Virus record (IMG/VR): IMGVR_UViG_2162886007_000107
Location: 124,001-188,000 of that record
DNA: 64,000 nt
Reading direction: 5' to 3' (one strand)
Below the pieces are notes generated by a model. That model saw only the letters and a program-made list of their open reading frames with translations, did not search any database and was not told where the DNA came from. The position numbers and the translations under genes are program-made. This document shows positions 2-62,423 of the stretch, piece by piece. Numbering within the stretch: the stretch's first letter is position 1; every line of letters starts with the position of its first letter.

Positions 2-1111
2 ATCCAACCCTTTCGCGACGACCTCATGATTGAGATTGTAGAGCGTCAGGGTTTCGGTCAAGTCATGAAGAAGTATCGGGCCATTCCAATGAGTGGCAGC
101 GACCCTGAACTGGAAGGTAACCACACTGCATTGGCTAACCTCATGGCCAATGACCACTTGAACATGGTTAGTGTGGACTTTCAGTTGTTTGAAATGGGCT
201 TTGCCAAATTCCGTAACGCCCCAGCAAGTGACATCTTCTTGATGGCTAAGCTGGAAGACGTATTCCACGACAAGCTGTCTGAATTCGGCGAGACTCTAAA
301 CCTTACCGGACCAGACTCTTGGAAAGGAGTTGATGTAGAGCAACCTGTAGACAACGACCGCATATTTAAGCAGGTGGTAATCCCGGCTAGTGTGCGTCTT
401 ATTGATTTGGGGGACTACCTTCAGAACGATGAGAAGTTTGGTGTGTACAACACTGGATTGGGGTTGTATTACAGGAAGGGCTTGTGGCGCATCTATCCCC
501 TCTACAGGGACGGACGTTATGAAAAGGCACGTAGGGTACTAAACATCTACAGACTGCCTGAGAACGCGTTTCCAACGCTTCACAACACATGGATTGAAGA
601 CGAGAAGAGTATCACTATCTTCTCCACGGGTAAAAGTACCAACAACGACGATACGGACATCGATCGTCAGACTCATGGCGTTGGTCAGCGGGTAATTGCT
701 GCAGATGCTGTGATGGGTGAAACTGGGCGCTACTACAACAAGGGTGTGGCGGTTACTACTCGTGAGGATAGTCTCTCTGAGTTCAAAACAGTTAACCGTA
801 AGTCTGGGGAAGAATGGATTCCATTGGACCCTACTCCAACCAGTAACCTTGGTAAGCGTTTAACCAAGAATGCGGAGAACGATACCTCGGTTACTACAGT
901 GCCTTGGCATAACTCCGATGCACTGAAGATCGATCCTGGGATGCCCCTGCGTTTCTTCTACATGCGTGGTGACATTCTTGTTTACAAGGAGGGTAGTGTG
1001 GCCGGTCTGTTGAGTAAGTACCAAATGGATACTGAAAGTGTTCAACCAGTATTCAGGGAACACTCGGTTATTACCTTGACCATCAACAGTCAGGAGTACG
1101 TCGTCAAGTAA
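2..1111 (+). CDS. 5'-truncated conserved jumbo-phage protein, probably virion structural (baseplate/tail)
   Basis: Frame is open from position 2 (IQPFRDDLM...), so the gene begins left of the window. Product guessed from style and context only. Confidence 0.5.
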   Translation: MQPFRDDLMIEIVERQGFGQVMKKYRAIPMSGSDPELEGNHTALANLMANDHLNMVSVDFQLFEMGFAKFRNAPASDIFLMAKLEDVFHDKLSEFGETLNLTGPDSWKGVDVEQPVDNDRIFKQVVIPASVRLIDLGDYLQNDEKFGVYNTGLGLYYRKGLWRIYPLYRDGRYEKARRVLNIYRLPENAFPTLHNTWIEDEKSITIFSTGKSTNNDDTDIDRQTHGVGQRVIAADAVMGETGRYYNKGVAVTTREDSLSEFKTVNRKSGEEWIPLDPTPTSNLGKRLTKNAENDTSVTTVPWHNSDALKIDPGMPLRFFYMRGDILVYKEGSVAGLLSKYQMDTESVQPVFREHSVITLTINSQEYVVK

Positions 1112-1243
1112 AAGTCCACTGGAGGTTTGCTCTTATACACTACTAGAAAACTGTCTGCGGAAGCGGGTGGGGAGATCCCTTCCTTATTTCTGCAACCTAG
1201 TGGAGCGTAAGCGACCTCCTTCTTCTTGTATCGAGTAATCACA

Positions 1244-1549
1244 ATGGAAAAGCCAGATCTTCAAACCATGTTGAACCTTGCTTCTAAAGCTTATACCGAA
1301 GCTTTGCAGGAAGGCATTATCTCTACTGTTGAGGTTGGCGACCGTGTCAACAAATCTCTGGAAGACTACATCAAAGGCGGAGACTTTCCTCCAACCACCG
1401 CCTACAAGTTTTCTATTCAGGGTGATGGTGAAGGGAACGTTATCAAGAATGGTGTGGTGAAGGCTCACTTCCTTGGTGGTGGCTTGAACATTGAAATTGT
1501 TGAAGAACATATTACCTTTCGTAACACCCAACCATCTTTAACTAATTAA
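1244..1549 (+). CDS. hypothetical protein (~101 aa)
   Basis: ORF track 1226..1549; ATG at 1244 (MEKPDLQ) preferred; tightly coupled to the next gene. Confidence 0.7.
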   Translation: MEKPDLQTMLNLASKAYTEALQEGIISTVEVGDRVNKSLEDYIKGGDFPPTTAYKFSIQGDGEGNVIKNGVVKAHFLGGGLNIEIVEEHITFRNTQPSLTN

Positions 1550-1561
1550 TGGAATATCCCG

Positions 1562-2356
1562 ATGCAACAAGACAACGTTAAAGAAGCACTGTGCCAAGAA
1601 CTTTGTGGTTATGCGATGCTCGGCCTGCACAAGTGCCATGAGAAGAATTGGCAGTCGTCCAAATACGCAGCCAAAGTTATCAAGCACGAAGTAAAGACTC
1701 AGGCTATTCTCAACAACTCCCAGCTCAAAGGAGTGCAGTTGGGGATTGCTATTGAAGAGATGTCTCCAGGCATCATGGCCCCTGCTTGTGAAGTTACTGT
1801 AAAGTGCGTTAGCAAAGATAATTTCATCATCTACCTGGTATCGAAAGCCCCAACGGCAACCACTCATGTGGAAGATACGATCGTGGATGAACCAGAACCT
1901 CTGGAACCTTACGAAGGAACTCCAAAGGCTGCTCCACAAATGCGCATGCTGCGTAGCCACATTCCTTTCCAAACCAATCCGGCTGAAGACAAACTCATCG
2001 AGACCTGGGCAAAGGGATTGGGGCAAAGTCTGGAAGACGATATGCGTTCGAAGTTCGAGCATATCAAGAAAGTGGTTATGGACGAGCTGGGGTATACGGA
2101 AGATCGTCAGCTCATGCCATTGGGTCTGAAGACTCACCTGGAGCGCTTGGCTGGCCATCGTTTCAATTACCTTGAGATGTTCAAGGATGACATCAAGTAC
2201 CAGGATGAAGCGTCCCTACGTCGTCAACTGTACTTCTTCAACCTACTGGCAGCTTTGAACACAGTAGGAAGCTACCTCAAAGGCGAATGGGCTGGTCACG
2301 AAGAAGTCATGGTTGAAGGTAAGGCTACCGACGAGATCCCTCACGTCCAGGTTTGA
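1562..2356 (+). CDS. hypothetical protein, paralog of 2427..3401
   Basis: 264-aa ORF; AGHRFNYLEMFKDDI matches AGDVYDYLDMYTKDI in the next gene. Confidence 0.8.
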   Translation: MQQDNVKEALCQELCGYAMLGLHKCHEKNWQSSKYAAKVIKHEVKTQAILNNSQLKGVQLGIAIEEMSPGIMAPACEVTVKCVSKDNFIIYLVSKAPTATTHVEDTIVDEPEPLEPYEGTPKAAPQMRMLRSHIPFQTNPAEDKLIETWAKGLGQSLEDDMRSKFEHIKKVVMDELGYTEDRQLMPLGLKTHLERLAGHRFNYLEMFKDDIKYQDEASLRRQLYFFNLLAALNTVGSYLKGEWAGHEEVMVEGKATDEIPHVQV

Positions 2357-5056: not shown

Positions 5057-5605
5057 ATGATTCTTAGAACCCCCAATGGGAACCCATTGAAGGTGTTTTT
5101 TCTGACCAATGCGATGGCCAGAGTTCTGAAACGAACCGGTGTTCCTTTCAGCGAAATGAGTTCGGTAGAGACATACCATGACAAGCTCACTCATGGAGAG
5201 ATCGCCGGTATTCTCAAAATGGAATTCTGTGCGGCTAAGGTATTGGGCACCCAAATGTCCAACCCTGATCTGCACTTCAAGAATGATTATCAAGGCGGGA
5301 TGTTAAAAGACGCATTTAATAAGGTTGATGGTGAAACCTTATCGGCTGCATTTTTTAACTGCTCCAAATTCAGCTTCTTGAATGCGGGCAACAACACCTT
5401 GCTGATCAGTTTGGACGACCAGGAGGATGAAACAATTCCTGGTTGGTCCAATGCTAAGGGAACAACGTTCTCCGAAGCTTTGCTGGAAACCATCTATGCG
5501 GTCCATGGTTACATGGAATGTCATCATGGTCCCATCGTTGATCCAAAGGTTGGTGAGTTCACGCTCGCATATGTGTTTAAACTGCTTGGCGACCAGAGTT
5601 CGTAA
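5057..5605 (+). CDS. conserved jumbo-phage protein between DnaB and capsid (phiKZ gp119 position), probably virion
   Basis: 182-aa ORF, RBS GGAG; product by synteny only. Confidence 0.6.
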   Translation: MILRTPNGNPLKVFFLTNAMARVLKRTGVPFSEMSSVETYHDKLTHGEIAGILKMEFCAAKVLGTQMSNPDLHFKNDYQGGMLKDAFNKVDGETLSAAFFNCSKFSFLNAGNNTLLISLDDQEDETIPGWSNAKGTTFSEALLETIYAVHGYMECHHGPIVDPKVGEFTLAYVFKLLGDQSS

Positions 5606-5635
5606 GAGTTCTGTCGACACGCAATAAAACAATCA

Positions 5636-5673
5636 TATGTGTAGCAACATATACACGAACAAACATGTTTGTT
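5636..5673 (+). promoter_or_regulatory. capsid leader: TATG late-promoter candidate plus a perfect 16-bp palindrome
   Basis: TATG at 5636-5639 (phiKZ late consensus); AACAAACATGTTTGTT at 5658-5673. Confidence 0.45.
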
Positions 5674-5703
5674 TAAAAGTTTTATCAAAAAGGATATCCT
5701 TCC

Positions 5704-7899: not shown

Positions 7900-7993
7900 T
7901 GAGCCTGCCCGATACGTACTACGGGGTACTCTCCCCGAAGTAAAGAAACGATCAGGTAGGCAGTAACGCGGTTGTAGAGTAAATCCCCTCCTG

Positions 7994-8040
7994 CCCTACT
8001 CCCTTCACGGGGAGTAGGGTGGGTGGAGGTTTATTTTTTT
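7994..8040 (+). terminator. intrinsic terminator (CCCTAC family)
   Basis: CCCTACTCCC-TTCACG-GGGAGTAGGG followed by TTTATTTTTTT. Confidence 0.85.
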
Positions 8041-26605: not shown

Positions 26606-29600
26606 ATGAACTTCCCCATAGTTCCCGAATATCGGAAAGACATTCTCAATACCAACATTGAGAACAAGATTAAGGGTGAGCCGTTCGAGCTTCCTGCCAA
26701 ATCTAAAAAGGGTTACATCCTTGTTCCGGTACACGCTCCATTTTTCGTAAAAAGTTTGAAAGTTTACAACGGTAACGGCGAGCCACTCACTCCTGGTGAC
26801 AAAGGCGATTACCGTATCTACAGGATTATGGGGGGTTTGACTGATCTGACCGCTAAGTCTGTGTCGTGCATGATTGAATTCCTTAACCCGGATATTCGTT
26901 CAGGCTTCATCGACTATGATGTTGTTGGTCACTTCAGTCTGTTCGACGCCGCCTTCCTGAAGATGGTTGAAGAAGCAGCCAACGACGAACGCCCGGTTTG
27001 GTGGGAGAATGTCCACAACAAACCTACCCATTTCCGTCCGAAGCTTCACGGTCACAGCTTGTTGTATGAAACTGTGGCAATGATGGATATGGTTGGTCTC
27101 ATTGACGACTTGCTTGCTTTGCTTAAGAGCCGCGGTCGTACTCCTTTGGAGATCAAGTTCGAGCATTACCTGCGACTGCTCATCCACTACATCAAGACTT
27201 ACAAGACTGAGCTACTGCTTGCCCTGGAGAGACACAAAGGGGCTTACAACCCACACGGTTGGAACAAAGCACAGTCTGGTCTGGAGTTGGTGGATAACTT
27301 CCCTACTGCTCGTGGTGCTGAACTCCTGCAACCACGCAACGATCGTCACCTGACTCCTGATGGCATCAAAACCATTATGGATGTCTACGGCTTTAACAGC
27401 TCTGAGTTGTTGGAGCAAATGAAGTTGCCTATTAGCCAGTTCGGTAACAGTAACTTCATTCCTGCAAACATCGACGGTTCGTTTGAAGGCTTGGGCGGGA
27501 CGATTGAAACTGGCGGGATGTGCTTGGAGAGTGATGGTACTATCACTTACCTGGCTAGCCGGATGGATGGTCGTACGCGTGGTCTGTATTTCTCTGTAAT
27601 GGAGAACACGACCGATCAAAATAAAGCATCTTTGGATTTCACAGGCTACAAATACGAACACGCCAAGTTTAATGCAAGCAACGCAAACGTTGACCGCATT
27701 GTTCAGGGTAGTGGTAGTGAATGTATCCTGGTTTCCGATAGTGTCACGGACCTTTGCTTTATTGGTGTGACTAACGGGTCTAACGATCCTGCTCGTCACG
27801 TTTACTCCAAGATCAATATGCGTCCTTTGGTCGAAGCCATCTTTAGCAACCCTGGTTCTTACCGCGCTCAAGATGTTTGGAATTACTTGAGTATTGCCAT
27901 GATGGGGGATTGGGTTTACATTTTCCTAACTGCCTCCACTCCTGTACCAATTGCTAGCAATAACGTGGGCTCTAACTGGAACTATAAGCATATTTTCCGT
28001 GTGCCGATTGCTTCCATTAAAGCAACTGTTGACGTGACTCCGGTTCGTCAGAACGTTAGCTTTGTCGATGCCGATGGCGTGCAGGTTAACAACAGTCCAT
28101 GGTGGCGCTGGTTCAGCATTACCCGAGATAGTAACGGCTATGTAACAAAGGCTTTGCACACCTTTGCTCCTTACCCTTCTAACGGATGGATTGGTCCGTA
28201 CCGTTCGGCAGTGACCGTAGTGGCGCAGGATCCTAGCCGTCCTGGTATCTACGCACTGAAGTTCATGACGGCCTACTACGCAGCGTACACGTCGCCTAGC
28301 GTTAACGGTCAGATGAACGTAACCCCTGAGATCAACTACGATTTCAACCCGTACACAGGGGTGTTTACATTAAAGTCGCAGTCCCCAAGCTTTAACGTAA
28401 ACTTTGGTGCAAACCCAATTGTTCCACCACAGTACACAGACGTTTCTCTGAAATATCTGTGTGTGTTCTTCTATCAAGCGCAAGGTATGAACATCTTTGA
28501 AGATGGCCGTATTTCGTCTTGCGGAGCATACGGGTTCAGTGGGTTCCCTCGTGGAGCTTTGATCATCAACTTGCGAGGGTCGTCAACTCGTTACGCTACA
28601 GTATCCAGGTTCTGGAATCGTGGTGAAGATTTTGGTCTTAGTGGGGTTACACGGGTTGTTCCGGAAAACATGATCAGTCCGGTAGAGAGCAGTGTTTGTC
28701 CACGAGCCTTCCTGTATGTTCCAGGTGGTGAGTATTACGTGGCCGGTCGGAAGAACGATGCTAATGCTCTTGGACTGTTTTTCAAAACAGTATCGGGTAA
28801 GTTTGCACCTCGACCTGAAATCAATAACCTCTACATGTCGAACGTCGTGGCTCGTCCATTGACTAACAACATTCGCAGGGTTAACTCATTGCCTGGTTTG
28901 GGTGGGGCTACCATCTCTGTCCCTTCTGCCAATTTGGACTTTGCAGGGATTGAAGTAGGTGAATCGGCCTTTTGTGTCAGCTACCAGAAAAAGAACTTCG
29001 ACCGAGATCGGATGGGCACTGCATGGCCAGGAGGTGTTGCTGATGGCGACGTAGTGTTGATTCAAACACACACTCGTCGTCTTGAAGCAGATGGAACTTT
29101 AACAATAGTTCCTACTCTGGAAGTTCTTTATCCAGAATGGATTGTTAACGTTATCAAAGCACAGGTACAGTTCCCTGCGCTGCTTCCTGGTAGCCGCAAT
29201 GTAATTGTTACTGTCAATGATCCGACATTCTCCCCTCTCGCAAGATTTGGGTGGTTGCCGGTCACGGTTTCGGTTCAATATTGCGGTGGTCTTGGTACTG
29301 CTGATGCGAACACCTTGTTTGCGACCATTCTCAGTATTCAACCGACTTATGTAGACAGTGGTGGCCGAAAAGTTGTAAACGGTCTTACTGTGGTTAACGT
29401 GCATCATGGTCGTTTTGAAAGTACCGCAATGAACACTCCGTATCCTTGGGGTAATCAGGAATACTCCGACACTCCGTTGTCAACAATGGACCCGGCTCGT
29501 ATTCAGTATTACCTTGATGGTAACAAGTTGTCTGTTTTCCATGGGTGCGGTGTAATGGCGCAAACCCCTGGCGACTCTTGGGGCGTTGATGCAACATTTG

Positions 29601-30181
29601 TCTACAACGACAGAACAGCATCTCATGCCTGGAGTTCGGTTGACTGGAGGGCGCGTTCTAGCCGTGGTACGGGGATCATCATGACTCCGGACAACGGTAT
29701 TCAAGTAATGCGTGGTTGGGATCAGTCCACTGGTAGTGCCGCTACTATCTCTGAAGGCCCGGTTAACCATCCATTGGTTGGTTCAGTGTATCCGGAGATT
29801 GGTTGGGTTGTCTTCTTTAAGACACCGATTAAAGCAACCTTTAACGGGAAGCTCTACATCATCCCAGCCGGCAACATTGACTTGCGCAATGTTGTTCCTA
29901 ACCCGGCAAACAAAACGTTCTACATCTACGCCATCCTCCGTAACGGTATCCCTGTTTACGAGGTGGCTGAAGATAAACGCCTGGAGACTCCGTTCCAAGT
30001 GTGGGTAGGTAAGGTGATTACAAATACCTTGCAAATCCTGACAGTGGAGCGGTTCAACGTGGTTACCATTAACAGTAACCGAGTGTCCGAAATCAAACGG
30101 GGTAACTGTATCCCGGCTACTTCTGGTCTTGCTATTGAAGAAGGTCAGTTGCCTTGGTTGCGGGCTGACGAACTCTCTTAA
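26606..30181 (+). CDS. large tail (fibre/baseplate) protein
   Basis: 1191 aa; NPHGWNKAQSGLELVDNFPTA motif; paralog of 30241. Confidence 0.75.
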   Translation: MNFPIVPEYRKDILNTNIENKIKGEPFELPAKSKKGYILVPVHAPFFVKSLKVYNGNGEPLTPGDKGDYRIYRIMGGLTDLTAKSVSCMIEFLNPDIRSGFIDYDVVGHFSLFDAAFLKMVEEAANDERPVWWENVHNKPTHFRPKLHGHSLLYETVAMMDMVGLIDDLLALLKSRGRTPLEIKFEHYLRLLIHYIKTYKTELLLALERHKGAYNPHGWNKAQSGLELVDNFPTARGAELLQPRNDRHLTPDGIKTIMDVYGFNSSELLEQMKLPISQFGNSNFIPANIDGSFEGLGGTIETGGMCLESDGTITYLASRMDGRTRGLYFSVMENTTDQNKASLDFTGYKYEHAKFNASNANVDRIVQGSGSECILVSDSVTDLCFIGVTNGSNDPARHVYSKINMRPLVEAIFSNPGSYRAQDVWNYLSIAMMGDWVYIFLTASTPVPIASNNVGSNWNYKHIFRVPIASIKATVDVTPVRQNVSFVDADGVQVNNSPWWRWFSITRDSNGYVTKALHTFAPYPSNGWIGPYRSAVTVVAQDPSRPGIYALKFMTAYYAAYTSPSVNGQMNVTPEINYDFNPYTGVFTLKSQSPSFNVNFGANPIVPPQYTDVSLKYLCVFFYQAQGMNIFEDGRISSCGAYGFSGFPRGALIINLRGSSTRYATVSRFWNRGEDFGLSGVTRVVPENMISPVESSVCPRAFLYVPGGEYYVAGRKNDANALGLFFKTVSGKFAPRPEINNLYMSNVVARPLTNNIRRVNSLPGLGGATISVPSANLDFAGIEVGESAFCVSYQKKNFDRDRMGTAWPGGVADGDVVLIQTHTRRLEADGTLTIVPTLEVLYPEWIVNVIKAQVQFPALLPGSRNVIVTVNDPTFSPLARFGWLPVTVSVQYCGGLGTADANTLFATILSIQPTYVDSGGRKVVNGLTVVNVHHGRFESTAMNTPYPWGNQEYSDTPLSTMDPARIQYYLDGNKLSVFHGCGVMAQTPGDSWGVDATFVYNDRTASHAWSSVDWRARSSRGTGIIMTPDNGIQVMRGWDQSTGSAATISEGPVNHPLVGSVYPEIGWVVFFKTPIKATFNGKLYIIPAGNIDLRNVVPNPANKTFYIYAILRNGIPVYEVAEDKRLETPFQVWVGKVITNTLQILTVERFNVVTINSNRVSEIKRGNCIPATSGLAIEEGQLPWLRADELS

Positions 30182-30240: not shown

Positions 30241-33200
30241 ATGAATCCGTTGCGAGTTGTTGAATTCGACATCCACGGTAAGAATCCCAAGAACAAGATC
30301 TCTGGGGAAATCATTCCTATCTTGGATAAGACCTGTCAATGGGTCATTCCTGATGGTTCGCCTTTCTTTGGCGATTACCCTGATCCTGGTCAATTCCCTA
30401 TTACTGTAGTTTACGATCAAGCTGGTCGTGAACTTGTGCGTGACCGCGACTACTGGCTTGAAGAAGAATTCATGCCACTGGTTGAAGTAACCGGTCGTCC
30501 TGTTGTTTGTTTTATCCGTCTTTCCGAGGCGGTGCTCGCTGCTAACAAATTCATCAAGGTCAACTACATCTCTGTAGGGGCTTACTTCATTCCTCGTAAC
30601 AGCATCGAAGAGTGGCTTAAGACTATTCAGAAAGGCCACGTCCCAGTTCCTTGGGAAAAGGTATTCGGTGTTCCTCCTACTGTACCTTCCGAATGGCACA
30701 GTCACAGCATCAAGACTGAGATTGGCGATTGGTTCGAGTTTACCCTGTTCTACACCTACGTAGCCGAGAACCTTTCGACTCGTCATGGTGGTGAACTCAA
30801 CCGTCAATTGGAAGCTGCTGCTACTGCTGCTTTTGCCCGTCTGGTTAGCGAACGCGATCTGAACTACAATCGCATGCGCACTCACACCAGCAACTACAAT
30901 CGTCCGCACGGCATCTTGCCTAAAGACGTGAACATGGGTAACCACCCTAACTACCCTACTGCCACTCTGGAAGAAGACCGTGCAGGTACAGCAGCTAACC
31001 GCCTGAGTACTCCTCAGGGTGTGCAAGAGCTGCTTAAAGACCTCACTCCTGATACCAGCGGTGCAATGCGTAACGGTATGGTTCCATTGAGCAAGCATTC
31101 CAATGGTACTTATATTCCGCCAAACATTACCGGGTCGTTTGAAGGTCTGGGTTCTCGTAGTGAGTGCATGGGGATTTGTCTGGAAGAAGACGGTCGGATG
31201 GTAATCATCCAGAACCACTTCGATGGTCGGAATGAAGGTTTGTACTACTCCACTCTGACCCAGTACAACAAATCGTTTGATCCGAAGAACCCGTACGAGT
31301 TTGTTTACACGAACTACAAATACGAGCCTCCGGTTCTGATCAACCAGGGCATTGTTCCTGATTCGATCATCATGGGCAGCAGCAACGAAGTTATCATGGT
31401 GGGTAAAACCACTACTGGTAACCCAGGTGCTAATGACCAATGGTTTGTTGCTCTAACCAACAACAGTTTTGACCCAAGTGGTCACCGTTATATCAAGACT
31501 GATATTTCGGACATTGTTGCGCAGACCGGGCCGTTCAACCCTGACAGCAAACTGGTTGCCGAGCCCTATCACGGTCGCTGGGCTATTTCGTTGATTGACG
31601 ATTGGATTCTCTTGATTGTCAACTCGTCGGAAGGTGGTGGTAACTTTGAATGGCAAACTGGTCGAATCTCCTATTGGCGAATCCCTAAAGCTAGTGTGAT
31701 TTCGGGTACTCCTGCTAAATGGCAGTTGATCCGTATCAACTATGTGAACGGTGATGGTGTTCAACTGAACAACCAGGCTTGGTGGGAATACGCTACCCGC
31801 GTGAAGGACGGGAACGGGGCCACGACTAAATGGGGTCGGTACACCTTTAGTCCTATTCCAAATGTGGGAGCCACGTATTTTGGTCGTCGTGCTTTGACGC
31901 TGACTGCTAAAAAGACAGGGTTCCAAAACGTCTGTTATTACAACCTGATGATGTACACCTTCTTGGAGTACACTCCTCCTGGTCGTGGCCTTAACCCAGT
32001 GGCCTTGTACACCAACATGGTGTATGAACTCAACGTGGCTACAGGGAACATGACGTTGTTGTTTGCTCAGCCGACTTACAACGTCGATTACTCTAGTCAG
32101 GCCTGGAATACTGAGAACGCCAAACTCGCCAATTTCTACAACTTCCTAGTTCGTTATACCAAGCAGGCAACAATCGTAACTGCTAAAGGTGAGTTTGTTA
32201 CCGGGGTCACAGACTGGGCGGCGGAGATGATCCCGCTTAACACTTTGATCCAAATGTCTCACTTCAAGTTCAAATCCAATAACCAGCCAATGGCTAACCC
32301 TGAGCAACTGCTGAGTGGGGATTTGAGTACCGATCGCATTATCCCTTACAACTTTGAAAACAAGTTCCGGGATATTCTCACACCGATTCCTGTTGGTTTG
32401 AGTCAGCGATGCTTGGCGTATGAGGCTGACGGTGAAAACTTTGTCACGACGTCCACACGTACGGATAAAGTGACCAATGCTTCTGTAGGGGCTAAAATTG
32501 GTTTCCGTACGGTGACCGGTGATTATGCTGTGCGTCCTCAAGTGACAAACTTGACGTACGCTAACCTGAAAAGCCGTCCCTTGGTTAACACCGCTTACGA
32601 AACCAACATGACCACTCTGGAGACGGTCATCAACGCTACTGGTACTGCTGCCGATTTGGCTGCCAGAGGAGTTGAGATGGGGACAATGGCATTAAGTGGC
32701 TGTTCTTGGTCTAACCTTAGTCGTTATGGCAACCGTAACTTGGTTTCTCCTAGTGCGGCTTTCCGGGCCAAGAATGAGGCGGGGGCTTTCCTCTCCTTCC
32801 CTAAAACTCATCGTCGGGAATTTGATGCGGCAGCCAGAAAGATGAACTACATCCCTAATGACTATTATGGTCTGGCGGAGTCGTTCAAGAATCAGGTTCG
32901 TGCATTGATCCCTGCTGGTAAGTTGGGTGCTTTGTGGTGCTTCTCACTGTACGTGTTGGATGGTGCTAACGGAGGCATGTTTGCTGGGATGAACAGTGCT
33001 TTGCTTCACGTAAAGTATTCGCGAGTTCCAGATGGACAAACTCCATTTGTTGACGCACAGTTCTTGCATGTGACGTTAAACGTGGAAGCTCCAAATGCTA
33101 ACCATCCCGGGTGCTACTTGATCACTGGCTTTAATGCGGCTAGTGGTACTGGCGAGTACGTACAGCATCGGGACATTGTTCCTGAACGTGCTGGTTTTGG

Positions 33201-33951
33201 TACGGACAACATCAACCGTGCAGCAATGCAGATCTATCGCAATGGCGGGATGCTTCGAGTAGCAGTGATGGGCAATCAGATTTGTGTGGGCGGTACTCAG
33301 TACTTTGACACGACGATCTTTGATATCAACACTGCCAACGGAGCTATTAGTCTTGTGGGTGCTAACCATATCGGTTGGGAGGCTGGCGATACTGTCACTG
33401 CTATTCCAAGAATTGGTCTTACCCATTTCACTGCGGACGGAAGTAAATGGCTGACGGACGTTGCCAGCATCGCCGAGACGGTTTATCCATCTGGTGGTTC
33501 TGCGCGGATATTCCCAACTCAGGGAAGGGTTGACCGCTACGCAACCCTCACGGCTTATCCAGAAGTGGCTTGGGCTTTGTTCATCCTGGAAGAAGTAGAG
33601 GTATTGTTCTCTGGTACTTTGTATCGCATGCCAACCGGTACTATCGATTTGCGTGATATCGATGCAGACCCACGGAACAAAGTGTTCTACCTTTACTCCA
33701 CCATGGAAGGCCAAAAGCCTCAGTACATCCTCACGGATATCAAACTGCGTCAAACCGCCAAGATCCTGCATGCGGCTACGATCACCACTGGTCCTAACCA
33801 GATCCTGTTGATCGAACGTCGTCAGCCGTTCCTTGTTGGTAACCTGGAGTTGAGCTATAACCGCAAAGGTGGTTCCATTCCGGTCAGTTCAGGCTTCCCT
33901 CAGGATCAAGGTAACTTTAATTTCCTGAAGGCTTCTGAGCTGTTGCCTTAA
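30241..33951 (+). CDS. large tail (fibre/baseplate) protein
   Basis: 1236 aa; YIPPNITGSFEGLG..GICLEEDG matches FIPANIDGSFEGLG..GMCLESDG in 26606. Confidence 0.75.
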   Translation: MNPLRVVEFDIHGKNPKNKISGEIIPILDKTCQWVIPDGSPFFGDYPDPGQFPITVVYDQAGRELVRDRDYWLEEEFMPLVEVTGRPVVCFIRLSEAVLAANKFIKVNYISVGAYFIPRNSIEEWLKTIQKGHVPVPWEKVFGVPPTVPSEWHSHSIKTEIGDWFEFTLFYTYVAENLSTRHGGELNRQLEAAATAAFARLVSERDLNYNRMRTHTSNYNRPHGILPKDVNMGNHPNYPTATLEEDRAGTAANRLSTPQGVQELLKDLTPDTSGAMRNGMVPLSKHSNGTYIPPNITGSFEGLGSRSECMGICLEEDGRMVIIQNHFDGRNEGLYYSTLTQYNKSFDPKNPYEFVYTNYKYEPPVLINQGIVPDSIIMGSSNEVIMVGKTTTGNPGANDQWFVALTNNSFDPSGHRYIKTDISDIVAQTGPFNPDSKLVAEPYHGRWAISLIDDWILLIVNSSEGGGNFEWQTGRISYWRIPKASVISGTPAKWQLIRINYVNGDGVQLNNQAWWEYATRVKDGNGATTKWGRYTFSPIPNVGATYFGRRALTLTAKKTGFQNVCYYNLMMYTFLEYTPPGRGLNPVALYTNMVYELNVATGNMTLLFAQPTYNVDYSSQAWNTENAKLANFYNFLVRYTKQATIVTAKGEFVTGVTDWAAEMIPLNTLIQMSHFKFKSNNQPMANPEQLLSGDLSTDRIIPYNFENKFRDILTPIPVGLSQRCLAYEADGENFVTTSTRTDKVTNASVGAKIGFRTVTGDYAVRPQVTNLTYANLKSRPLVNTAYETNMTTLETVINATGTAADLAARGVEMGTMALSGCSWSNLSRYGNRNLVSPSAAFRAKNEAGAFLSFPKTHRREFDAAARKMNYIPNDYYGLAESFKNQVRALIPAGKLGALWCFSLYVLDGANGGMFAGMNSALLHVKYSRVPDGQTPFVDAQFLHVTLNVEAPNANHPGCYLITGFNAASGTGEYVQHRDIVPERAGFGTDNINRAAMQIYRNGGMLRVAVMGNQICVGGTQYFDTTIFDINTANGAISLVGANHIGWEAGDTVTAIPRIGLTHFTADGSKWLTDVASIAETVYPSGGSARIFPTQGRVDRYATLTAYPEVAWALFILEEVEVLFSGTLYRMPTGTIDLRDIDADPRNKVFYLYSTMEGQKPQYILTDIKLRQTAKILHAATITTGPNQILLIERRQPFLVGNLELSYNRKGGSIPVSSGFPQDQGNFNFLKASELLP

Positions 33952-41862: not shown

Positions 41863-43815
41863 ATGCAGCACGAGGCCGATATCTTTAAGCGGATGGAAGA
41901 CCTGAGTAATCAAATTTCCAAACACGCTTATTTGTACTTTTACAAAGACAAATCTATCATCTCCGACTTTGCTTACGACGAGCTGACCAAGCAATTTAAA
42001 CAACTGTGCAAGGATCACCCTAAACTAGCCGAACTGTTTGAGATCAGAAACAAACCAGTCCCTATTCGGGAACCTGGCGGTCAAGGTCTGAAGGTTATTA
42101 CCTTTAATGAGCCGATGCTTAGTCTGGATAAGGTTTATACCCTAGACGAAATCGAACGGTTTAAAGCCAAGTTCCCTAAAGACACAGCTTTCTTTTACGA
42201 GCTGAAGTTGGACGGTTTGGCGCTGGAGATTGAATACAAGGACTGGAAGCTGTTTCGGATCACAACTCGTGGTAGTGGGCTGAGTGGTGAGGACGTTACT
42301 CACTCGCTGCCTTTGTTTGATAATTTACTGATGGACCTTCCACCTCATTTCCCACCTGACTTTAAAGTGCGCGGTGAAGCGATAGTTAGTTACGAGAACT
42401 ATCACATCTATAACGAAGCAGCCGCTAAGCCAGCCAAGAGTCCGCGTAATGCGGTTAGTGGTTGGGTACGAGCCCTTAAGAAGAACCAAAATAAGCAAGC
42501 CTTTGGTTTAGTTTACTTCTACGTTTACTGGGTAAATGATTCCCTTGGGTGCAAAACCTACGAGGATCTGCGTAATCAGTTGTTTAACGCTGGGTTCAAT
42601 GCTCCTCCACAGGCTTCCATGGAAGCGATCCGTGATGAAGTCGATAGTCAAGATTGGCCTGCTGACGGTATTGTCATTAAGGTCAATGACCTGGAGCTGC
42701 GTAAAGCAACAGGAGAAAACAATCAGTTCCCATTGTGGGCTACTGCTTGGAAGTATCCAAACAAAGAACTGACCACTCCTATCGAAGACGTTGAATGGAA
42801 TACAGGTATGACTGGCCGGGTAACACCAGTTGGTATTTATAACCCGGTTCATTTCGGTAGCGTGGAATGTAGTCGTGCTTCTATCGACAACTACTTCCAG
42901 TTCATGAAGCTCGGTCTACGCAAAGGCAGCGTCGTTACTGTTAGTAGAAACGGCGATGTTATCCCGCGTATTGTTGAGATGGTTGAGGAGGGAGATGGCG
43001 AACACTTCCAGGCTCCAGAGACCTGCCCAAGCTGCGGTAGTCTCTTGGAAGTACGTAAGGGCAAAACCAGTGCTGATCTCATCTGTAACAACGTTGTAGA
43101 GTGTCCTGAGCAGCTCATGCGTCGTTGTGAAGAGATGGTTAGCAAGAAGTGCTTGGACATTGAAGGTTTAGGCCCTGTGAAGATTGCAGAGCTTATTGAA
43201 GGTGGCCATGTTACTCGTACCGCCGACATTTTTAAGACGATGATTCCGATGCCTCCTAAAGCTTTAATCCAACTGCTTAGTTGTCAGGAGCAGCCGGCGC
43301 ACATCATCATCAAGGCATTGGGTCTACCAAAGATCGACTTGACTCGTGCTAAGAAGTTGGCAAGCGCTTGGCCTAGAGATACCAGTTTGATCGAGTTCCT
43401 CAAGGACACTGATCAACTCATGGCTATTGACGGTATTTCTGCGGGGATTGCTTTCCCTATTGCCAAGATCATGAAGAACGCGGACTTTGTAGCCAATGCT
43501 GAGGCTATCCTTGCTGTCCTTAAAGAAGATAGTTCCAAGGATAAGCAAGAGTACTGGATCAAAGGTTGCATCACAGGTTCTCTGGGGCAGTCTAGAGACG
43601 AACTAAAGGAGGTGTTTGGTGAACACGGCATTGAGCTAGTAGAAGACCTGACTAAGGACTGTCAGTTCCTTATTGTGGGCGAGCGTCCGGGGTTAAGTAA
43701 GAAATTAAAAGCAACTGAGCTGGGCATCGCTATAGTCGAAGGATCTAACGCGACCAGTATCGAAAAACTCATTGAAGAAATCAAATCAAGGGTACCGGGT
43801 AATGTCAACTCCTAA
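41863..43815 (+). CDS. ligA: NAD-dependent DNA ligase
   Basis: ISDFAYD (domain Ia), ELKLDG (adenylated K), RGEA, DGIVIK, AWKY, TG.VTP, CPSC..C..C zinc finger, C-terminal BRCT. Confidence 0.95.
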   Translation: MQHEADIFKRMEDLSNQISKHAYLYFYKDKSIISDFAYDELTKQFKQLCKDHPKLAELFEIRNKPVPIREPGGQGLKVITFNEPMLSLDKVYTLDEIERFKAKFPKDTAFFYELKLDGLALEIEYKDWKLFRITTRGSGLSGEDVTHSLPLFDNLLMDLPPHFPPDFKVRGEAIVSYENYHIYNEAAAKPAKSPRNAVSGWVRALKKNQNKQAFGLVYFYVYWVNDSLGCKTYEDLRNQLFNAGFNAPPQASMEAIRDEVDSQDWPADGIVIKVNDLELRKATGENNQFPLWATAWKYPNKELTTPIEDVEWNTGMTGRVTPVGIYNPVHFGSVECSRASIDNYFQFMKLGLRKGSVVTVSRNGDVIPRIVEMVEEGDGEHFQAPETCPSCGSLLEVRKGKTSADLICNNVVECPEQLMRRCEEMVSKKCLDIEGLGPVKIAELIEGGHVTRTADIFKTMIPMPPKALIQLLSCQEQPAHIIIKALGLPKIDLTRAKKLASAWPRDTSLIEFLKDTDQLMAIDGISAGIAFPIAKIMKNADFVANAEAILAVLKEDSSKDKQEYWIKGCITGSLGQSRDELKEVFGEHGIELVEDLTKDCQFLIVGERPGLSKKLKATELGIAIVEGSNATSIEKLIEEIKSRVPGNVNS

Positions 43816-53777: not shown

Positions 53778-54080
53778 ATGCCAGAAAGATCTCAATCCTT
53801 TCGTCGCCCCTGGATCTTCAAATCAATCGACGAGCCAGACATTAACTACGTCTGGTTAGCCGAATACATGGCTCAGCACAACCTGACAATGGAAGTTGCT
53901 TTGGAACACCTTTCGCACAAAATGCGAGAGTTCCTGGAGAAGGGTAAGGAAGTCCTGGAGCAACTGGACGGTAGTAATCCAGACCTGCTCAAGAACTGCG
54001 AGGTCTTTGTTGGTAGTTATCAACACGCTGTAGACTTCTACAGTCCCATTCCGTTGGTGCCGATTATAAAGGAAGAGTAA
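53778..54080 (+). CDS. hypothetical protein, W-x-x-Y helical family
   Basis: WLAEYMAQHNLTMEVA. Confidence 0.8.
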   Translation: MPERSQSFRRPWIFKSIDEPDINYVWLAEYMAQHNLTMEVALEHLSHKMREFLEKGKEVLEQLDGSNPDLLKNCEVFVGSYQHAVDFYSPIPLVPIIKEE

Positions 54081-54508
54081 TGTCGGATAAAGACAACAGC
54101 CTAGGCTTAGACGACTTTGGTGAGGACCCTCTTACCAAGCCGGAATTTCTTCGCAAGAAGACTGGTCCTCGTCCAATGCCATGGCTGACGTGGGATAACC
54201 CCAAAGTAAACCCCATGTGGTTGGCCGAGTATATGCATCAACACGATCTCTCTTTAGAGGTGGCGATGGAGCATTGGGCTGTTCACATGGGGCGCTTCAT
54301 AAAGCAGCTTACTAAAACGGTAGAGCTGGTTGAAAGTAGCGACGATAAAACCGTTAACGCCATAAAGGTATTTATCAAAGACCACAAACAAGTCGATGGC
54401 TTTTATGGTGAAATGCCTTTGGTTAATGTTCTCGTTAAGGGTAGCGAATGTCCTGTCCCGTTGAAAAAGAGCTTGCTGCCAGGTTCGAAAAACTCTTCAG
54501 AGACTTAG
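54080..54508 (+). CDS. hypothetical protein, tandem paralog of 53778
   Basis: WLAEYMHQHDLSLEVA; similarity extends to FY..MPLV near the C-terminus. Confidence 0.8.
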   Translation: MSDKDNSLGLDDFGEDPLTKPEFLRKKTGPRPMPWLTWDNPKVNPMWLAEYMHQHDLSLEVAMEHWAVHMGRFIKQLTKTVELVESSDDKTVNAIKVFIKDHKQVDGFYGEMPLVNVLVKGSECPVPLKKSLLPGSKNSSET

Positions 54509-54789: not shown

Positions 54790-54819
54790 CTCCCTACTCC
54801 CCGCTAAGGGAGTAGGGAG
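54790..54819 (+). terminator. intrinsic terminator (CCCTAC family)
   Basis: CTCCCTACTCCC-CGCTAA-GGGAGTAGGGAG. Confidence 0.8.
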
Positions 54820-55338: not shown

Positions 55339-55761
55339 ATGCAAAAGTCTATCGAAGTAACCCAAGAATTCACCTTCGCAGAAGTTTACCGCGACCTGGT
55401 CTGGTTCGGTAATGAGTTTCAAAAATGTGCGGCAGTGAAGTTCGAAGCGAGTGGTGATCCATCCATTCCCGCCGATCTGAGCGGCCGTCAGTTCGTGTTC
55501 GAAACCCGCGTCGGTACCAACCGTGCTACTGGTAAATCTCTTGCCGGCATCCTGATCTACGAGGTCAAAGTCGACGGTCAGGAAGGCGAATACTTTGCCA
55601 GTGTTTCTCGCGACCTGGATCTGACAGAAGATCCTGAAGTTATCTTCGCTGATCCAGAGAATATGCTGACAGTAGAAAGTGTCGAAATGCTGCTGCTGGT
55701 GGTTCAGAAATCGGTAATCGAATTCCGCGGTGAACTCGACCAACCTAAGGTTGTTCATTAA
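55339..55761 (+). CDS. hypothetical protein, LxG[RK]xF family
   Basis: ADLSGRQFVFET...AGILIYE. Confidence 0.8.
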   Translation: MQKSIEVTQEFTFAEVYRDLVWFGNEFQKCAAVKFEASGDPSIPADLSGRQFVFETRVGTNRATGKSLAGILIYEVKVDGQEGEYFASVSRDLDLTEDPEVIFADPENMLTVESVEMLLLVVQKSVIEFRGELDQPKVVH

Positions 55762-55773
55762 GGAGGGGTAGTC

Positions 55774-56187
55774 GTGACTACTTCTGAACCTTTCATCGTG
55801 AAATACGCCAAGGACTTCAAACTTTGGCGTATCCACAAAACGTTCCTGAATTTCGGCTTGGCTACTCGTACCAAGCCCGAGGTTCGCTTCATGAAGAACA
55901 ATCAGACTCCAGCTATTCTTCAGGGTCGTGATTTTGTCTTCAGTACTGCTGAGGGTCTTGACTCTCAGAATAATAATCGCCCAGTGATCGGTGTACAAAT
56001 TACAGAACGTATCATGGGCATGGAAGTTGATTTGTGCAAGGTTGTGCAGTTCAAAGACGACAGATCGTCACCTGCGGTTGTAATGTTACTCGGTGGTAAC
56101 GTGTTGGAAGAAGCGTTCATTAAGGACGTTCTCAAAATTGCTGAAGCAGTTATCCGTAACCATCCGGACTACTTCGACCCTAATTAA
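55774..56187 (+). CDS. hypothetical protein, LxG[RK]xF family
   Basis: AILQGRDFVFST...IGVQITE; GGAGG RBS, GTG start. Confidence 0.8.
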   Translation: MTTSEPFIVKYAKDFKLWRIHKTFLNFGLATRTKPEVRFMKNNQTPAILQGRDFVFSTAEGLDSQNNNRPVIGVQITERIMGMEVDLCKVVQFKDDRSSPAVVMLLGGNVLEEAFIKDVLKIAEAVIRNHPDYFDPN

Positions 56188-56641: not shown

Positions 56642-57049
56642 ATGGCTAAGGTATCGTTTAAAGAGATCCACACCAATCTGTCTACTTACATGGAAGCTCG
56701 TAAGGAATACCCTGTAGTTACTTTCGAAGACAACGAAACTGTTCTTCGTCAGCTGCGTGGTAAAAGTTTCATGTTCGCTGCCATGAAAGGTGAGGACAAG
56801 CACAAGAAACCACAACTGGGGATCATGGTCGTAGAAAAGACCCCAGTTGGTGGTAATCCAGTCTGTGCACTCACTGCGGCCGATAAAGCCAAAGATCGTC
56901 GATTCAAAGTGCAGTTCCAAGGCAAACTGCTGCTGCTGGACGAGGAAGTCAACGTCCTTCTCCAGCAACTGGGTAACCGTATGAAGGCTGCGGCTCTTAC
57001 CAGTAATCTGGCACAAGGAGCTTCTGATGGCTCGCAAACAACGCAATAA
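56642..57049 (+). CDS. hypothetical protein, LxG[RK]xF family
   Basis: RQLRGKSFMFAA...LGIMVVE. Confidence 0.75.
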   Translation: MAKVSFKEIHTNLSTYMEARKEYPVVTFEDNETVLRQLRGKSFMFAAMKGEDKHKKPQLGIMVVEKTPVGGNPVCALTAADKAKDRRFKVQFQGKLLLLDEEVNVLLQQLGNRMKAAALTSNLAQGASDGSQTTQ

Positions 57050-58385: not shown

Positions 58386-58961
58386 GTGGATACCGTAACT
58401 CAAGAACTGCAAGCGATGTTGGCTAAGCCGAAAAAGAAATATGGCTTTCCTCCGTTCGTGCTGGATGAGTCCCTGTACCCTATCGAGCAAGAAAACCAGG
58501 TTATCGATTACTTCCGCGACAACTGGGTAGATAACGATAAAAAGATTATCAAGATGGTGAAGCACGTTTACAACTCTGTGCCTCGCTTTATCCAGAAGTC
58601 TTTCCTGGACGTCATCTTGAAGGTAGCTGACCCGAAAAAGATGTTGGTCTTCTACTTTACAGAGAAAGAGCGTTGGACAGAAATCATCAACCAGATGGTT
58701 GCTGAAGGTAACCACGGGGTTATCTACGACGACCACAACGTTTACGGGTTTGTTGTAGAGACTCGTGAGAACTGGTTGAAGGAAGGCGACAAGTGGCACA
58801 AGGATGACGAACGTGAAATCATCAAGCGCTCCTACTACAAGTGGGCTCGTGAAAAAGGTCTTACTCATTTCAAGGGTAAGGTCATGATGTTTCACCACTT
58901 TGGTTTCTCGGGGATGTCTTACTTCTTCGACCACAAAATCGACGATAGCGAAGGCTACTAA
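58386..58961 (+). CDS. hypothetical protein
   Basis: AGGAG RBS, GTG start, 191 aa. Confidence 0.8.
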   Translation: MDTVTQELQAMLAKPKKKYGFPPFVLDESLYPIEQENQVIDYFRDNWVDNDKKIIKMVKHVYNSVPRFIQKSFLDVILKVADPKKMLVFYFTEKERWTEIINQMVAEGNHGVIYDDHNVYGFVVETRENWLKEGDKWHKDDEREIIKRSYYKWAREKGLTHFKGKVMMFHHFGFSGMSYFFDHKIDDSEGY

Positions 58962-58972
58962 GGAGAGCTTCT

Positions 58973-59566
58973 GTGACGTTCTATAAAGGTGGCGAGTTGT
59001 TACCCCTAACGTTGTATCGGGGAGAAGTAGATCACCCCAGTGTCAGCAAGCCACACAGCTTCCCGCGTGCTTTGTACTTCGGTGACTTGGAAACAGCTCA
59101 TGCTTATTCCGATTACCTGGAAAACTCGGGCGATTACAAGACCAGTCGTATCTATCCGGTACACATTGTTCTTAAACGCCCATTTATCAATCAACCGGAA
59201 GATCCGTTTCTGGATATGCCAGAGATTGTTAGTCGTCTTGGTCTGGAAGAAGCTCGTCGTATTGCTAAGCGCTTTGCTAAGTACATCGAAGAGACGGATC
59301 AATGGCGGTATCGTGTCAATTCAGAAGGTCGGTATGATGGGGTAGAACATTACCTTGCCTGTCCGCGTTCTGATGTAAACAATCTGTGTTTCCAGGCGTA
59401 TCGATTCTTCGATAGCCAAATGGAAGTAAATCGTTTGAGAAGGTTAGGGTATGACGGTGCGATCCATGCTGGTAGTGGAAGTGGAAGTGCCGGTAAACCC
59501 GAGTACTGCGTGTTCAACATCGAACAAGTCTTTTCCATACCCGGTCAGTCTTTTCTGAGTAAATGA
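58973..59566 (+). CDS. ADP-ribosyltransferase-fold protein (ART-PolyVal-like, stand-alone)
   Basis: LYRG...LYFG..ETAHAY...IYPVHIVLKRPF...GYDGAIH...EYCVFNIEQV. Confidence 0.65.
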   Translation: MTFYKGGELLPLTLYRGEVDHPSVSKPHSFPRALYFGDLETAHAYSDYLENSGDYKTSRIYPVHIVLKRPFINQPEDPFLDMPEIVSRLGLEEARRIAKRFAKYIEETDQWRYRVNSEGRYDGVEHYLACPRSDVNNLCFQAYRFFDSQMEVNRLRRLGYDGAIHAGSGSGSAGKPEYCVFNIEQVFSIPGQSFLSK

Positions 59567-59925
59567 AAATGGCTAATGATGAGGTATATAAAGCGGGGCT
59601 TGACGAACCTTCCGTCTTTAGTGGTGATGGGGAGCAACCAGTCAGTATCCACTGGCTGGCCTGGTACGTCCGTAACAACCATGGGGCTAGCCTCATGGTA
59701 GCAATGATCGCTGGCAACAATCTGATCCGTCAGCTGTGTAGCGAGGGGCTTCGTGCAGTCTGTACCAATAGCGAACCTATCATGTTTGTAGAAGTGTTCA
59801 TCAATGAGACAGCATTTAGTGTGCCTCGGATGGAATGGGTTATCTGGTACGCCAATCTACACAAGGTTGGTTATACCAGCGCTAACTGGGCAGGAAAGCT
59901 TCAAAACTATATCACTAACAGGTAA
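59563..59925 (+). CDS. hypothetical protein, W-x-x-Y helical family
   Basis: EPSVF...SIHWLAWYVRNNHGASLMVA. Confidence 0.75.
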   Translation: MKMANDEVYKAGLDEPSVFSGDGEQPVSIHWLAWYVRNNHGASLMVAMIAGNNLIRQLCSEGLRAVCTNSEPIMFVEVFINETAFSVPRMEWVIWYANLHKVGYTSANWAGKLQNYITNR

Positions 59926-62380: not shown

Positions 62381-62388
62381 ATATGCTG

Positions 62389-62423
62389 CTGTCAGGCTCC
62401 TCCGGGGGCCTGGCAGTCTTTTC
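62389..62423 (+). terminator. intrinsic terminator
   Basis: CTGTCAGGCTCC-TCCG-GGGGCCTGGCAG (G-U pairs) then TCTTTTCT. Confidence 0.7.

Follow-up and report, generated by a model that had tools for sequence, protein, structure and literature searches.

A stand-alone Arg-type relative of the ART-PolyVal domain, a candidate mono-ADP-ribosyltransferase of a phiKZ/EL-like jumbo phage

Does a small phage gene standing on its own encode an ADP-ribosyltransferase (ART), and if so, of which type and acting on what? The question is raised by an open reading frame (ORF) of 197 codons in the IMG/VR virus record IMGVR_UViG_2162886007_000107. The ORF lies at positions 58973..59566 on the plus strand of the window, that is, of the whole 64,000-nucleotide stretch analysed here (bases 124001-188000 of the 236,430-bp record, which is rated 100% complete). 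An initial annotation, made from the sequence alone, had described the product as a stand-alone ART similar to ART-PolyVal. Our analysis leads to a more specific reading: the protein is probably a soluble, single-domain enzyme of the ART superfamily, from an Arg-type branch homologous to ART-PolyVal, and would act as a mono-ART on a host macromolecule. The probability of this reading is, in our estimate, about 0.68.

The gene, its family and its predicted fold

The program-made ORF list and translation give the gene a GTG start. All the motifs on which the initial annotation relied are found in the 197-amino-acid (aa) protein, in the order claimed and far above chance: L14-Y15-R16-G17; L34-Y35-F36-G37 with A42 and Y45; I60-Y-P-V-H-I-V-L-K-R-P70; G159-Y-D-G162; E177-Y-C-V-F181; and E184-Q185-V186. 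A Shine-Dalgarno sequence, AAGGAG (58960..58965, plus strand), stands about 7 nt upstream of the GTG, and the orthologs start at the identical alignment column. A word-based search detected at least 27 further proteins of 189-205 aa, 42-72% identical to the window protein with E-values down to 6e-89, many of them encoded on contigs of 233-242 kb. Across the alignment of 27 orthologs, R16, G17, Y35, F36, G37, A42, Y45, R59, G159, D161, A163, I164, E177, C179, V180, F181 and Q185 are invariant. Strain differences within the ORF leave the catalytic residues untouched. Of the ten that were listed, eight affect the third base of a codon and seven leave the amino acid unchanged; the three replacements (E93D, Y143H and A166G) each occupy a column that also varies between orthologs. 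Given the ORF, its ribosome-binding site, the 27 orthologs and this synonymous-biased variation, this is a genuine gene, maintained by purifying selection. The idea that a chance string of motifs was picked up in non-coding DNA or in a mis-called ORF is refuted by the same observations and by the confidently predicted fold described below, and nothing was found in its favor. In addition, the gene and its neighbors are partly covered, at ~98% identity, by short contigs from one plant-metagenome RNA-Seq library. This fits transcription but is no proof of it, since DNA can occur in such libraries.

The sole Pfam match of the protein is to PF18760, ART-PolyVal (23.1 bits, E = 1.4e-4, profile positions 23-136). 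In PHROGs it falls into phrog_8642 (E = 1.6e-26), to which no function is assigned. The relationship to PF18760 is clearer among the relatives. The profile is matched by 21 of the 27 orthologs (best E = 7.7e-8), and five orthologs carry a precomputed PF18760 assignment. A tblastn search of cultured phages revealed stand-alone homologs in Klebsiella phage Eowyn, Serratia phages KpGz_1 and KpHz_2, and Erwinia phages PhiEaH1 and Ea277G. The same search found homologs embedded in the 1,262-aa gp225 of Tunturiibacter phage Tunturi_5, whose gene adjoins the portal gene, and in a >2,100-aa protein of Dolichospermum phage Dfl-JY45. These two proteins contain two and four ART-PolyVal stretches, respectively. 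The Tunturi_5 stretch that is homologous to the window protein reaches 48.8 bits, above the cutoff, in an alignment spanning the full PF18760 profile; the corresponding Dfl-JY45 stretch scores only 18.3 bits. Likewise, the Arg-type copy in locus L018 scores 35.9 bits, above the cutoff, and those in L027, L029 and L033 are missed. A six-frame PF18760 search of the phage's genome gave no match; it missed the known ORF itself as well, and control genomes were equally silent. Judged by these profile and sequence matches, homology to ART-PolyVal is secure, although the Pfam model captures the Arg-type branch only marginally. The assignment to ART-PolyVal in the initial annotation therefore survives as a statement of homology, backed by the orthologs, the embedded copies above the cutoff and the structural evidence. 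It does not survive as a statement of canonical membership, since the score of the window protein lies under the Pfam cutoff and its combination of active-site residues is R-Y-E rather than H-Y-D.

The Tunturi_5 protein has an observation of its own. It (XOB77668.1, L002:1435-5223) is annotated as a "MutT/NUDIX hydrolase", and no NUDIX domain is found in it by Pfam at E<=1e-3. Its Pfam content consists of a nucleoside 2-deoxyribosyltransferase-like domain and two ART-PolyVal domains, one His-type and one Arg-type, and its gene immediately precedes the portal gene.

A model predicted with AlphaFold2 from the alignment of orthologs has a mean pLDDT (predicted local distance difference test) of 88.5 and a pTM (predicted template modeling score) of 0.82. 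The model, together with its matches in PDB, BFVD and the ESM Atlas, displays the split beta-sheet core of the ART superfamily. The superfamily triad, His or Arg on strand 1, Tyr or Ser on strand 2 and Glu, Asp or Gln on strand 5, has its counterparts in R16, position 35 (Ser, Thr or Tyr among the relatives) and E177. Foldseek matches to PDB are weak, with a best E-value of 1.3e-3, and almost all are ART folds (PARP4, PARP2, PARP1, tankyrases, MbcT, ParT and Vis). A second, independent structural aligner, applied to the model and 48,161 representative PDB chains, placed ART-superfamily proteins in about 45 of its top 49 rows, at Z values up to 6.7. They include tankyrase (6.2), ParT (6.1), PARP1 (5.9), diphtheria toxin (5.5), MbcT (5.5), NatT (5.3) and AcrIF11 (5.2); exotoxin A, cholix, Arr and Tpt1 rank lower. 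These individual Z values are middling by the aligner's own caveat, and it is the uniformity of the match list that constitutes the evidence. Among the predicted viral structures of BFVD, a strong match (E = 4e-18, template modeling (TM) score 0.79-0.84) is an uncharacterized protein of Klebsiella phage Eowyn, and 33 matches have E<=1e-3, many titled "ART-PolyVal-like domain-containing protein" or "PolyVal ADP-ribosyltransferase". In the ESM Atlas, the neighbors of the model are clusters in which 92-100% of the members have PF18760, in many cases accompanied by MuF or LPD domains; one further neighbor is a RES cluster. The ART fold, which the initial annotation had read from the motifs, is thus supported by the model and by two PDB match lists dominated by ART folds.

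The best PDB match in both structural searches is chain B of 9k3a, the pre-ejectosome of cyanophage A4 (Foldseek probability 0.99; Z = 6.7 over 141 residues). This chain is part of a virion-packaged ejection complex, and the term ADP-ribosyltransferase is absent from the text of the paper describing 9k3a. Judging from the modeled fold, the chain may hold an unannotated ART-like domain. The aligned range is, however, widely spread (470..1600), and the sequence profile failed to find the chain. Designed Kelch repeats, which match "GYDG", were among the chance matches in the sequence searches of PDB.

The Arg-type branch

The ARTs of polyvalent proteins (the Tox-ART-HYD2 clade) have been described as having a His, Tyr, Asp active site (Iyer et al. 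2017, PMC5512222). Four canonical ART-PolyVal copies from the same giant proteins as the embedded relatives have Y-H-[GA]-T on strand 1. In contrast, strand 1 is Y-R-G-E in the window protein and in all of its stand-alone and embedded relatives, which bears out, in four of four canonical copies, the initial remark that Arg occurs where the family usually has His. A second difference is a helical insert (residues ~82-157; 59216..59443, plus strand) between both halves of the ART sheet, modeled as helices with pLDDT >94. The insert is specific to the Arg-type branch: it is kept in the embedded relatives, absent or shorter in three of the four His-type copies, and replaced by an unrelated insertion in the fourth. 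His-type and Arg-type copies occur side by side within single giant proteins. Since the embedded relatives carry the same Arg, this residue is a trait of the branch and not something special to the stand-alone form.

A pattern scan of IMG/VR yielded 39 further loci. The domain is embedded in ORFs of 960 to >2,800 aa at 24 of them, many of these ORFs being cut by the contig end. At two more loci it sits in a multidomain ORF, one of 425 aa (open-ended) and one of 585 aa. The remaining 13 loci are ORFs of 185-312 aa, eight of them on contigs of 184-457 kb. Most relatives are thus embedded, in agreement with the initial statement that the domain is normally found within giant polyvalent proteins. 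The giant ORFs with Arg-type copies are true polyvalent proteins and also carry LPD22, InPase, RadC-JAB and DUF7178.

A residue census was taken over 47 sequences. D161, G162 and I164 belonged to the search pattern, so that their invariance is partly by construction; R16, G17, E18, Y45 and E177 were outside it. The numbers of sequences retaining each residue are as follows: R16, 46; G17, 46; E18, 44; F36, 42; A42, 47; Y45, 46; E177, 45; and F181, 47. The first-strand motif takes the form [YFW]-R-G-E in the branch as a whole, strand 2 has S/T/Y-F and strand 5 E-Y-x-V-F, and position 59 is Arg in 34 sequences and Lys in 11. The R16 codon (59018..59020, plus strand) falls in the model strand formed by residues 14-20, and R16 is the predicted NAD-binding residue in place of the family His. 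The stretch Y35-F36-G37...A42...Y45 (59075..59107, plus strand) forms strand 2 and a helix (model strand 34-37, helix 39-45) and is the predicted nicotinamide-stacking region. Position 35 is Ser in 24 sequences, Thr in 14 and Tyr in 9, the Tyr being restricted to the jumbo-phage clade of the window protein. The last element (59447..59503, plus strand; model strands 162-167 and 176-180) comprises the strand G159-Y-D-G-A-I-H, a Gly/Ser-rich loop at residues 168-176, and E177, the predicted catalytic Glu that opens the strand E-Y-C-V-F. The initial claim that strand 5 retains Glu holds for the Arg-type branch (45 of 47), but it does not describe the family, for which Asp has been published and in which the four canonical copies are not consistently acidic. 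Many embedded copies have E-x-E on strand 5. In the window protein this motif reads K-P-E, the first Glu position being variable among its orthologs.

The nearly invariant Arg and Glu occupy the positions that, in other ARTs, bind NAD+ and catalyze the transfer. This bears on the possibility that the protein is a catalytically dead ART-like module, serving as a sponge or decoy that binds NAD+, ADP-ribose or a host protein. Pseudo-ART folds do occur among the structural matches (TASOR pseudo-PARP, Z = 3.9; PARP13, Z = 5.6), and E177 is lost in two relatives, being Gln in L012 and Val in L040. However, an Arg and a Glu that are near-invariant in 47 diverse sequences and invariant in 27 orthologs are what is expected of catalytic residues, and we consider a dead module highly improbable.

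By these sequence features, the window protein can be placed in a distinct Arg-type sister branch rather than among the canonical ART-PolyVal members. It shares with ART-PolyVal (PF18760) the G-[YF]-D-G strand and the x-V/I-F strand and is homologous to it in sequence and structure. It differs in having Arg instead of His, Glu instead of the published Asp (its residues being R16, Y35 and E177), the extra helical insert of ~75 residues, and the form of a stand-alone, single-domain ORF. The branch as a whole can be described as an R-[S/T/Y]-E variant that is not covered in PMC5512222, some of its members already being filed under "ART-PolyVal" by Pfam and UniProt. A branch with an Arg/Glu active site as such was not found described in the literature searched. 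The branch also resembles the R-S-E enzymes (the cholera-toxin, C2/C3 and Alt/VIP2 clade), as many embedded relatives combine Ser or Thr on strand 2 with E-x-E, but membership in that clade is not detectable from the sequences. The window protein has the Arg, but its strand 2 is Y-F-G and its strand 5 K-P-E, and no Pfam or PHROG family of the R-S-E clade was matched at E<=1.

In a quick maximum-likelihood tree, from which only exact duplicates were left out and in which support was estimated by the Shimodaira-Hasegawa-like approximate likelihood-ratio test (SH-aLRT) alone, the four His-type copies are split from the Arg-type sequences with 98% support. The window protein falls within a clade of 17 stand-alone genes (96%), to which the Eowyn and PhiEaH1 proteins form a weakly supported sister group (86%). 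The stand-alone form thus belongs, as far as the tree indicates, to a well-supported clade of jumbo-phage genes. Stand-alone forms emerge at about five places among the embedded ones, which may reflect either a release of domains from polyvalent proteins or their capture into them.

The stand-alone form, which the initial annotation had presented as unusual, turns out to be familiar. ARTs are reported in >40% of jumbo phages (PMC9503650), and Yersinia phage fHe-Yen9-03, Dickeya phage JA11 and Salmonella phage Mutine are among the phages in which a stand-alone ART-PolyVal-like protein had already been annotated. The proteins of Klebsiella phage Eowyn (CAD5235998.1 / A0A7R8R9B7), Erwinia phage PhiEaH1 (AGX01786.1) Serratia phage Moabite and others, all of them uncharacterized, have the same size and fold, the motif Y-R-G-E and the strand E-Y-R-I/V-F, but they are only ~34% identical to the window protein and have Thr on strand 2 where it has Tyr. 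A gene such as the one in the window is what one would expect among the accessory genes of a jumbo phage, and its ART annotation is sound and fairly ordinary.

Predicted activity and candidate targets

By analogy with established ART enzymology, R16 and the Y35/Y45 region would hold NAD+, the Gly/Ser-rich loop 168-176 would serve as the acceptor-recognition loop, and E177 would activate the ribose C1'' so that a single ADP-ribose is moved to the acceptor. The acceptor would be a host macromolecule, most probably a protein, and the action would take place in the cytoplasm during infection, where it would disable a host function or defense. The initial annotation had proposed a putative role in host takeover or anti-defense, with either protein or nucleic acid as the possible target. 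The stand-alone protein is more likely produced inside the cell, from the array of small genes in which it is encoded. The embedded relatives, as one copy is encoded beside a portal gene, would fit the model of virion-packaged, injected effectors put forward in PMC5512222.

Among known ART systems, the PARP, tankyrase and diphtheria-toxin (H-Y-E) enzymes, together with AcrIF11, give the best solved structural matches (Z 5.2-6.2). The window protein has Arg in place of their strand-1 His, the identity is 8-20%, and there is no match at the sequence level. Regulatory or polymer-forming elements of PARPs were not identified in the window protein. The pattern Y-F-x...A-x-x-Y and the loop followed by E-Y-x-V-[YF] appear to resemble features of PARP1 and the tankyrases.

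The match lists also include enzymes that act on other substrates. Tpt1/KptA- and Scabin-type structures are present low in the list (Z = 4.4, 3.3 and 2.9), which raises the possibility that host DNA or RNA is ADP-ribosylated, as by DarT, pierisin/Scabin or Tpt1/KptA. Polyvalent proteins with the Arg-type copy do include domains directed at nucleic acids, RadC-JAB among them, and in BFVD the partners bear the names nuclease and ParB. The phage is phiKZ/EL-like, a group that encloses its own DNA in a protein shell, and a DNA-shielding phage could afford a DNA-modifying enzyme in the cytoplasm. However, the top structural matches are protein-modifying ARTs and NAD-consuming toxins, no DarT, Tpt1 or pierisin-type family of Pfam was matched at E<=1, and protein modification is the published prediction for polyvalent ARTs (PMC5512222). 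A nucleic-acid target thus seems unlikely.

Another group of structural neighbors, of the RES/MbcT type (MbcT, Z = 5.5; Xre-RES, 5.3; VPA0770, 5.6; the Atlas RES cluster, TM 0.46), points to an enzyme that degrades NAD+. MbcT is an NAD+ phosphorylase, and RES domains likewise use Arg on strand 1. A glycohydrolase or phosphorylase of the RES/MbcT or TNT/Tse6 type would collapse or reshape the NAD+ pool of the host. Such a drain would harm the phage itself, which encodes an NAD-dependent DNA ligase (41863-43815, plus strand; phrog_3869, E = 2.8e-154). Moreover, the scores of the RES/MbcT structures are no better than those of the transferases, and the likeness is confined to the level of the fold, no match to the RES family (PF08808) being found at E<=1. 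We regard this alternative as improbable.

If the protein is a mono-ART acting on a host protein, which host process might be affected? The initial annotation had pointed to the Alt and Mod enzymes of T4, which modify the host RNA polymerase or ribosomal proteins. Like T4 Alt, ModA and ModB (Alt/VIP2 clade, R-S-E), the window protein is a candidate phage-encoded mono-ART with Arg on strand 1 and Glu on strand 5, expected to act on host macromolecules. The likeness is one in mode of working and not in family: there is no sequence relation detectable by Pfam or PHROGs, and the window protein lacks S-T-S and has K-P-E where the T4 enzymes have E-x-E. More importantly, T4 relies on the host RNA polymerase modified by Alt and Mod, whereas the phage studied here encodes its own. 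Two divergent RNA polymerase beta-like frames are found in the phage genome outside the window, at genome positions 87829-88050 (L048) and 194771-194872 (L049), with PF00562 scores of 23.2 and 12.6 bits, respectively. The two frames agree with the division of phiKZ-like polymerases into a virion and a non-virion enzyme. The head (capsid) protein is 59% identical to that of Erwinia phages RisingSun and Joad and 53% to that of Pseudomonas phage EL. From these head-protein identities and the polymerase-like genes, the source can be assigned to the phiKZ/EL-like jumbo phages with their own transcription machinery. The analogy with T4 is accordingly a poor fit. A survey found that ARTs are commonest in jumbo phages without RNA polymerases of their own (PMC7824862). 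Since this phage brings its own, and in view of that survey, re-programming of the host RNA polymerase is unlikely. Host shut-off or neutralization of an immune protein would be more likely than an Alt-like retargeting of the polymerase. AcrIF11 provides a precedent of a small phage ART that inactivates a defense protein.

Several observations weigh against the proposed activity. In the literature searched, no activity has been demonstrated for any ART-PolyVal member. The window protein stays under the curated cutoff of PF18760 (23.1 versus 31.2 bits), with strand 1 outside the matched part. Structural matches to PDB are all middling (Z <=6.7; Foldseek E = 1.3e-3 or weaker), and searches of PDB chain sequences with the protein, the ortholog profile and a mixed ART-PolyVal profile returned chance matches only, with no solved relative. 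The first Glu of E-x-E is Lys in the window protein, so that its acceptor specificity is not readable. Finally, no conserved partner, eraser, immunity or target gene accompanies the ART gene among the loci compared.

A bolder idea, which we offer tentatively and hold to be possible rather than probable, is that the Arg-type branch is a functionally separate class with an R-S-E-like site inside the H-Y-D lineage. Its acceptor chemistry or target would differ from that of the His-type neighbors in the same injected proteins. The stand-alone jumbo-phage clade, in which strand 2 has changed from Ser/Thr to Tyr and the first Glu of E-x-E is lost, may then have been re-tuned to a new host target, for example an immune protein, in phages for which the host RNA polymerase is dispensable.

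Genomic setting and significance

The ART gene sits within a densely packed array of small genes on the plus strand. The array is bordered upstream, at ~54.8 kb, by a strong 13-bp hairpin (54790..54819, minus strand) and downstream, at 62.4 kb, by a strong, terminator-like 13-bp hairpin (62388..62417, plus strand), both found in a hairpin scan. No excess of sigma-70-type promoters over chance was found in the region, as expected of a phage equipped with polymerases of its own, a result that offers no hint on when the gene is expressed. Immediately upstream lies a gene for 191 aa (58386..58961, plus strand) and downstream a gene for 120 aa (59563..59925, plus strand), the latter with its own ATG overlapping the stop codon of the ART gene (ATGA). 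Neither can be assigned to a family: the upstream gene gave no Pfam, PHROG or language-model lead and the downstream gene no Pfam or PHROG match. Synteny is limited to the close phage clade. In the related phage locus L006, the upstream gene is 67% and the downstream gene 46% identical. Distant phages share the ART gene only, the 191-aa gene being absent from their loci.

In Eowyn, the stand-alone Arg-type homolog of the ART gene is preceded, at a distance of 8 nt, by a Macro-domain gene (35 bits; L001:2558-3570). The two could form a writer-eraser pair unique to that lineage. As a general feature the Macro-domain partner was rejected, as the Eowyn Macro protein is unmatched in all other related loci. 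A profile search of the genome of the window's phage detected no Macro gene, and no ARG, NADAR or NUDIX genes were detected there either, the controls being positive in both cases.

Three small tandem genes upstream of the ART gene (55339-55761, 55774-56187 and 56642-57049, plus strand), encoding 135-140 aa, are paralogs that all match one gene of L006. Similarly, the adjacent ORFs 53778-54080 and 54080-54508 (plus strand) both match another single gene of that locus. The resemblance among these small paralogs points to a local gene-family expansion. Elsewhere in the window, two adjacent paralogs of ~1,200 aa (26606-30181 and 30241-33951, plus strand) match phrog_3573 over near-full length, with N-termini matching virion structural or tail proteins; this pair is best described, from its sequence matches, as a tandem duplication of a large virion protein. 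The window also encodes the major head protein, virion structural proteins, an SbcC-like nuclease subunit and a polymerase, in addition to the DNA ligase. The fraction of guanine plus cytosine is 0.56 over the major head protein gene (6001-8000; ORF 5704-7899, plus strand), compared with ~0.47-0.50 elsewhere. A 752-aa antisense ORF (5524-7782, minus strand) shadows this gene and is most likely an artefact of codon composition.

DNA near-identical or 97-98% identical to that of the phage is found in soil, rhizosphere, plant and indoor metagenomes. A megablast search of cultured phages with a 5-kb region gave no match, and hence there is no close cultured relative. Between 57000 and 62500 of the window, contigs from plant-metagenome RNA-Seq map to several genes of the array at ~97-98% identity, which suggests that a close relative of the phage is active, or at least present, in plant-associated samples.

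ARTs have been described as the commonest macromolecule-modifying domains of phage polyvalent effectors. A small, soluble, single-domain version offers an easier entry to their biochemistry and structure than an effector of 2,000 residues; in this sense the window protein is a tractable example rather than a surprise. Its Arg/Glu active site bears on the relation between the R-S-E and H-Y-E types of ARTs. As this phage transcribes with polymerases of its own, the target of its ART would reveal what phage ADP-ribosylation serves besides the hijacking of RNA polymerase.

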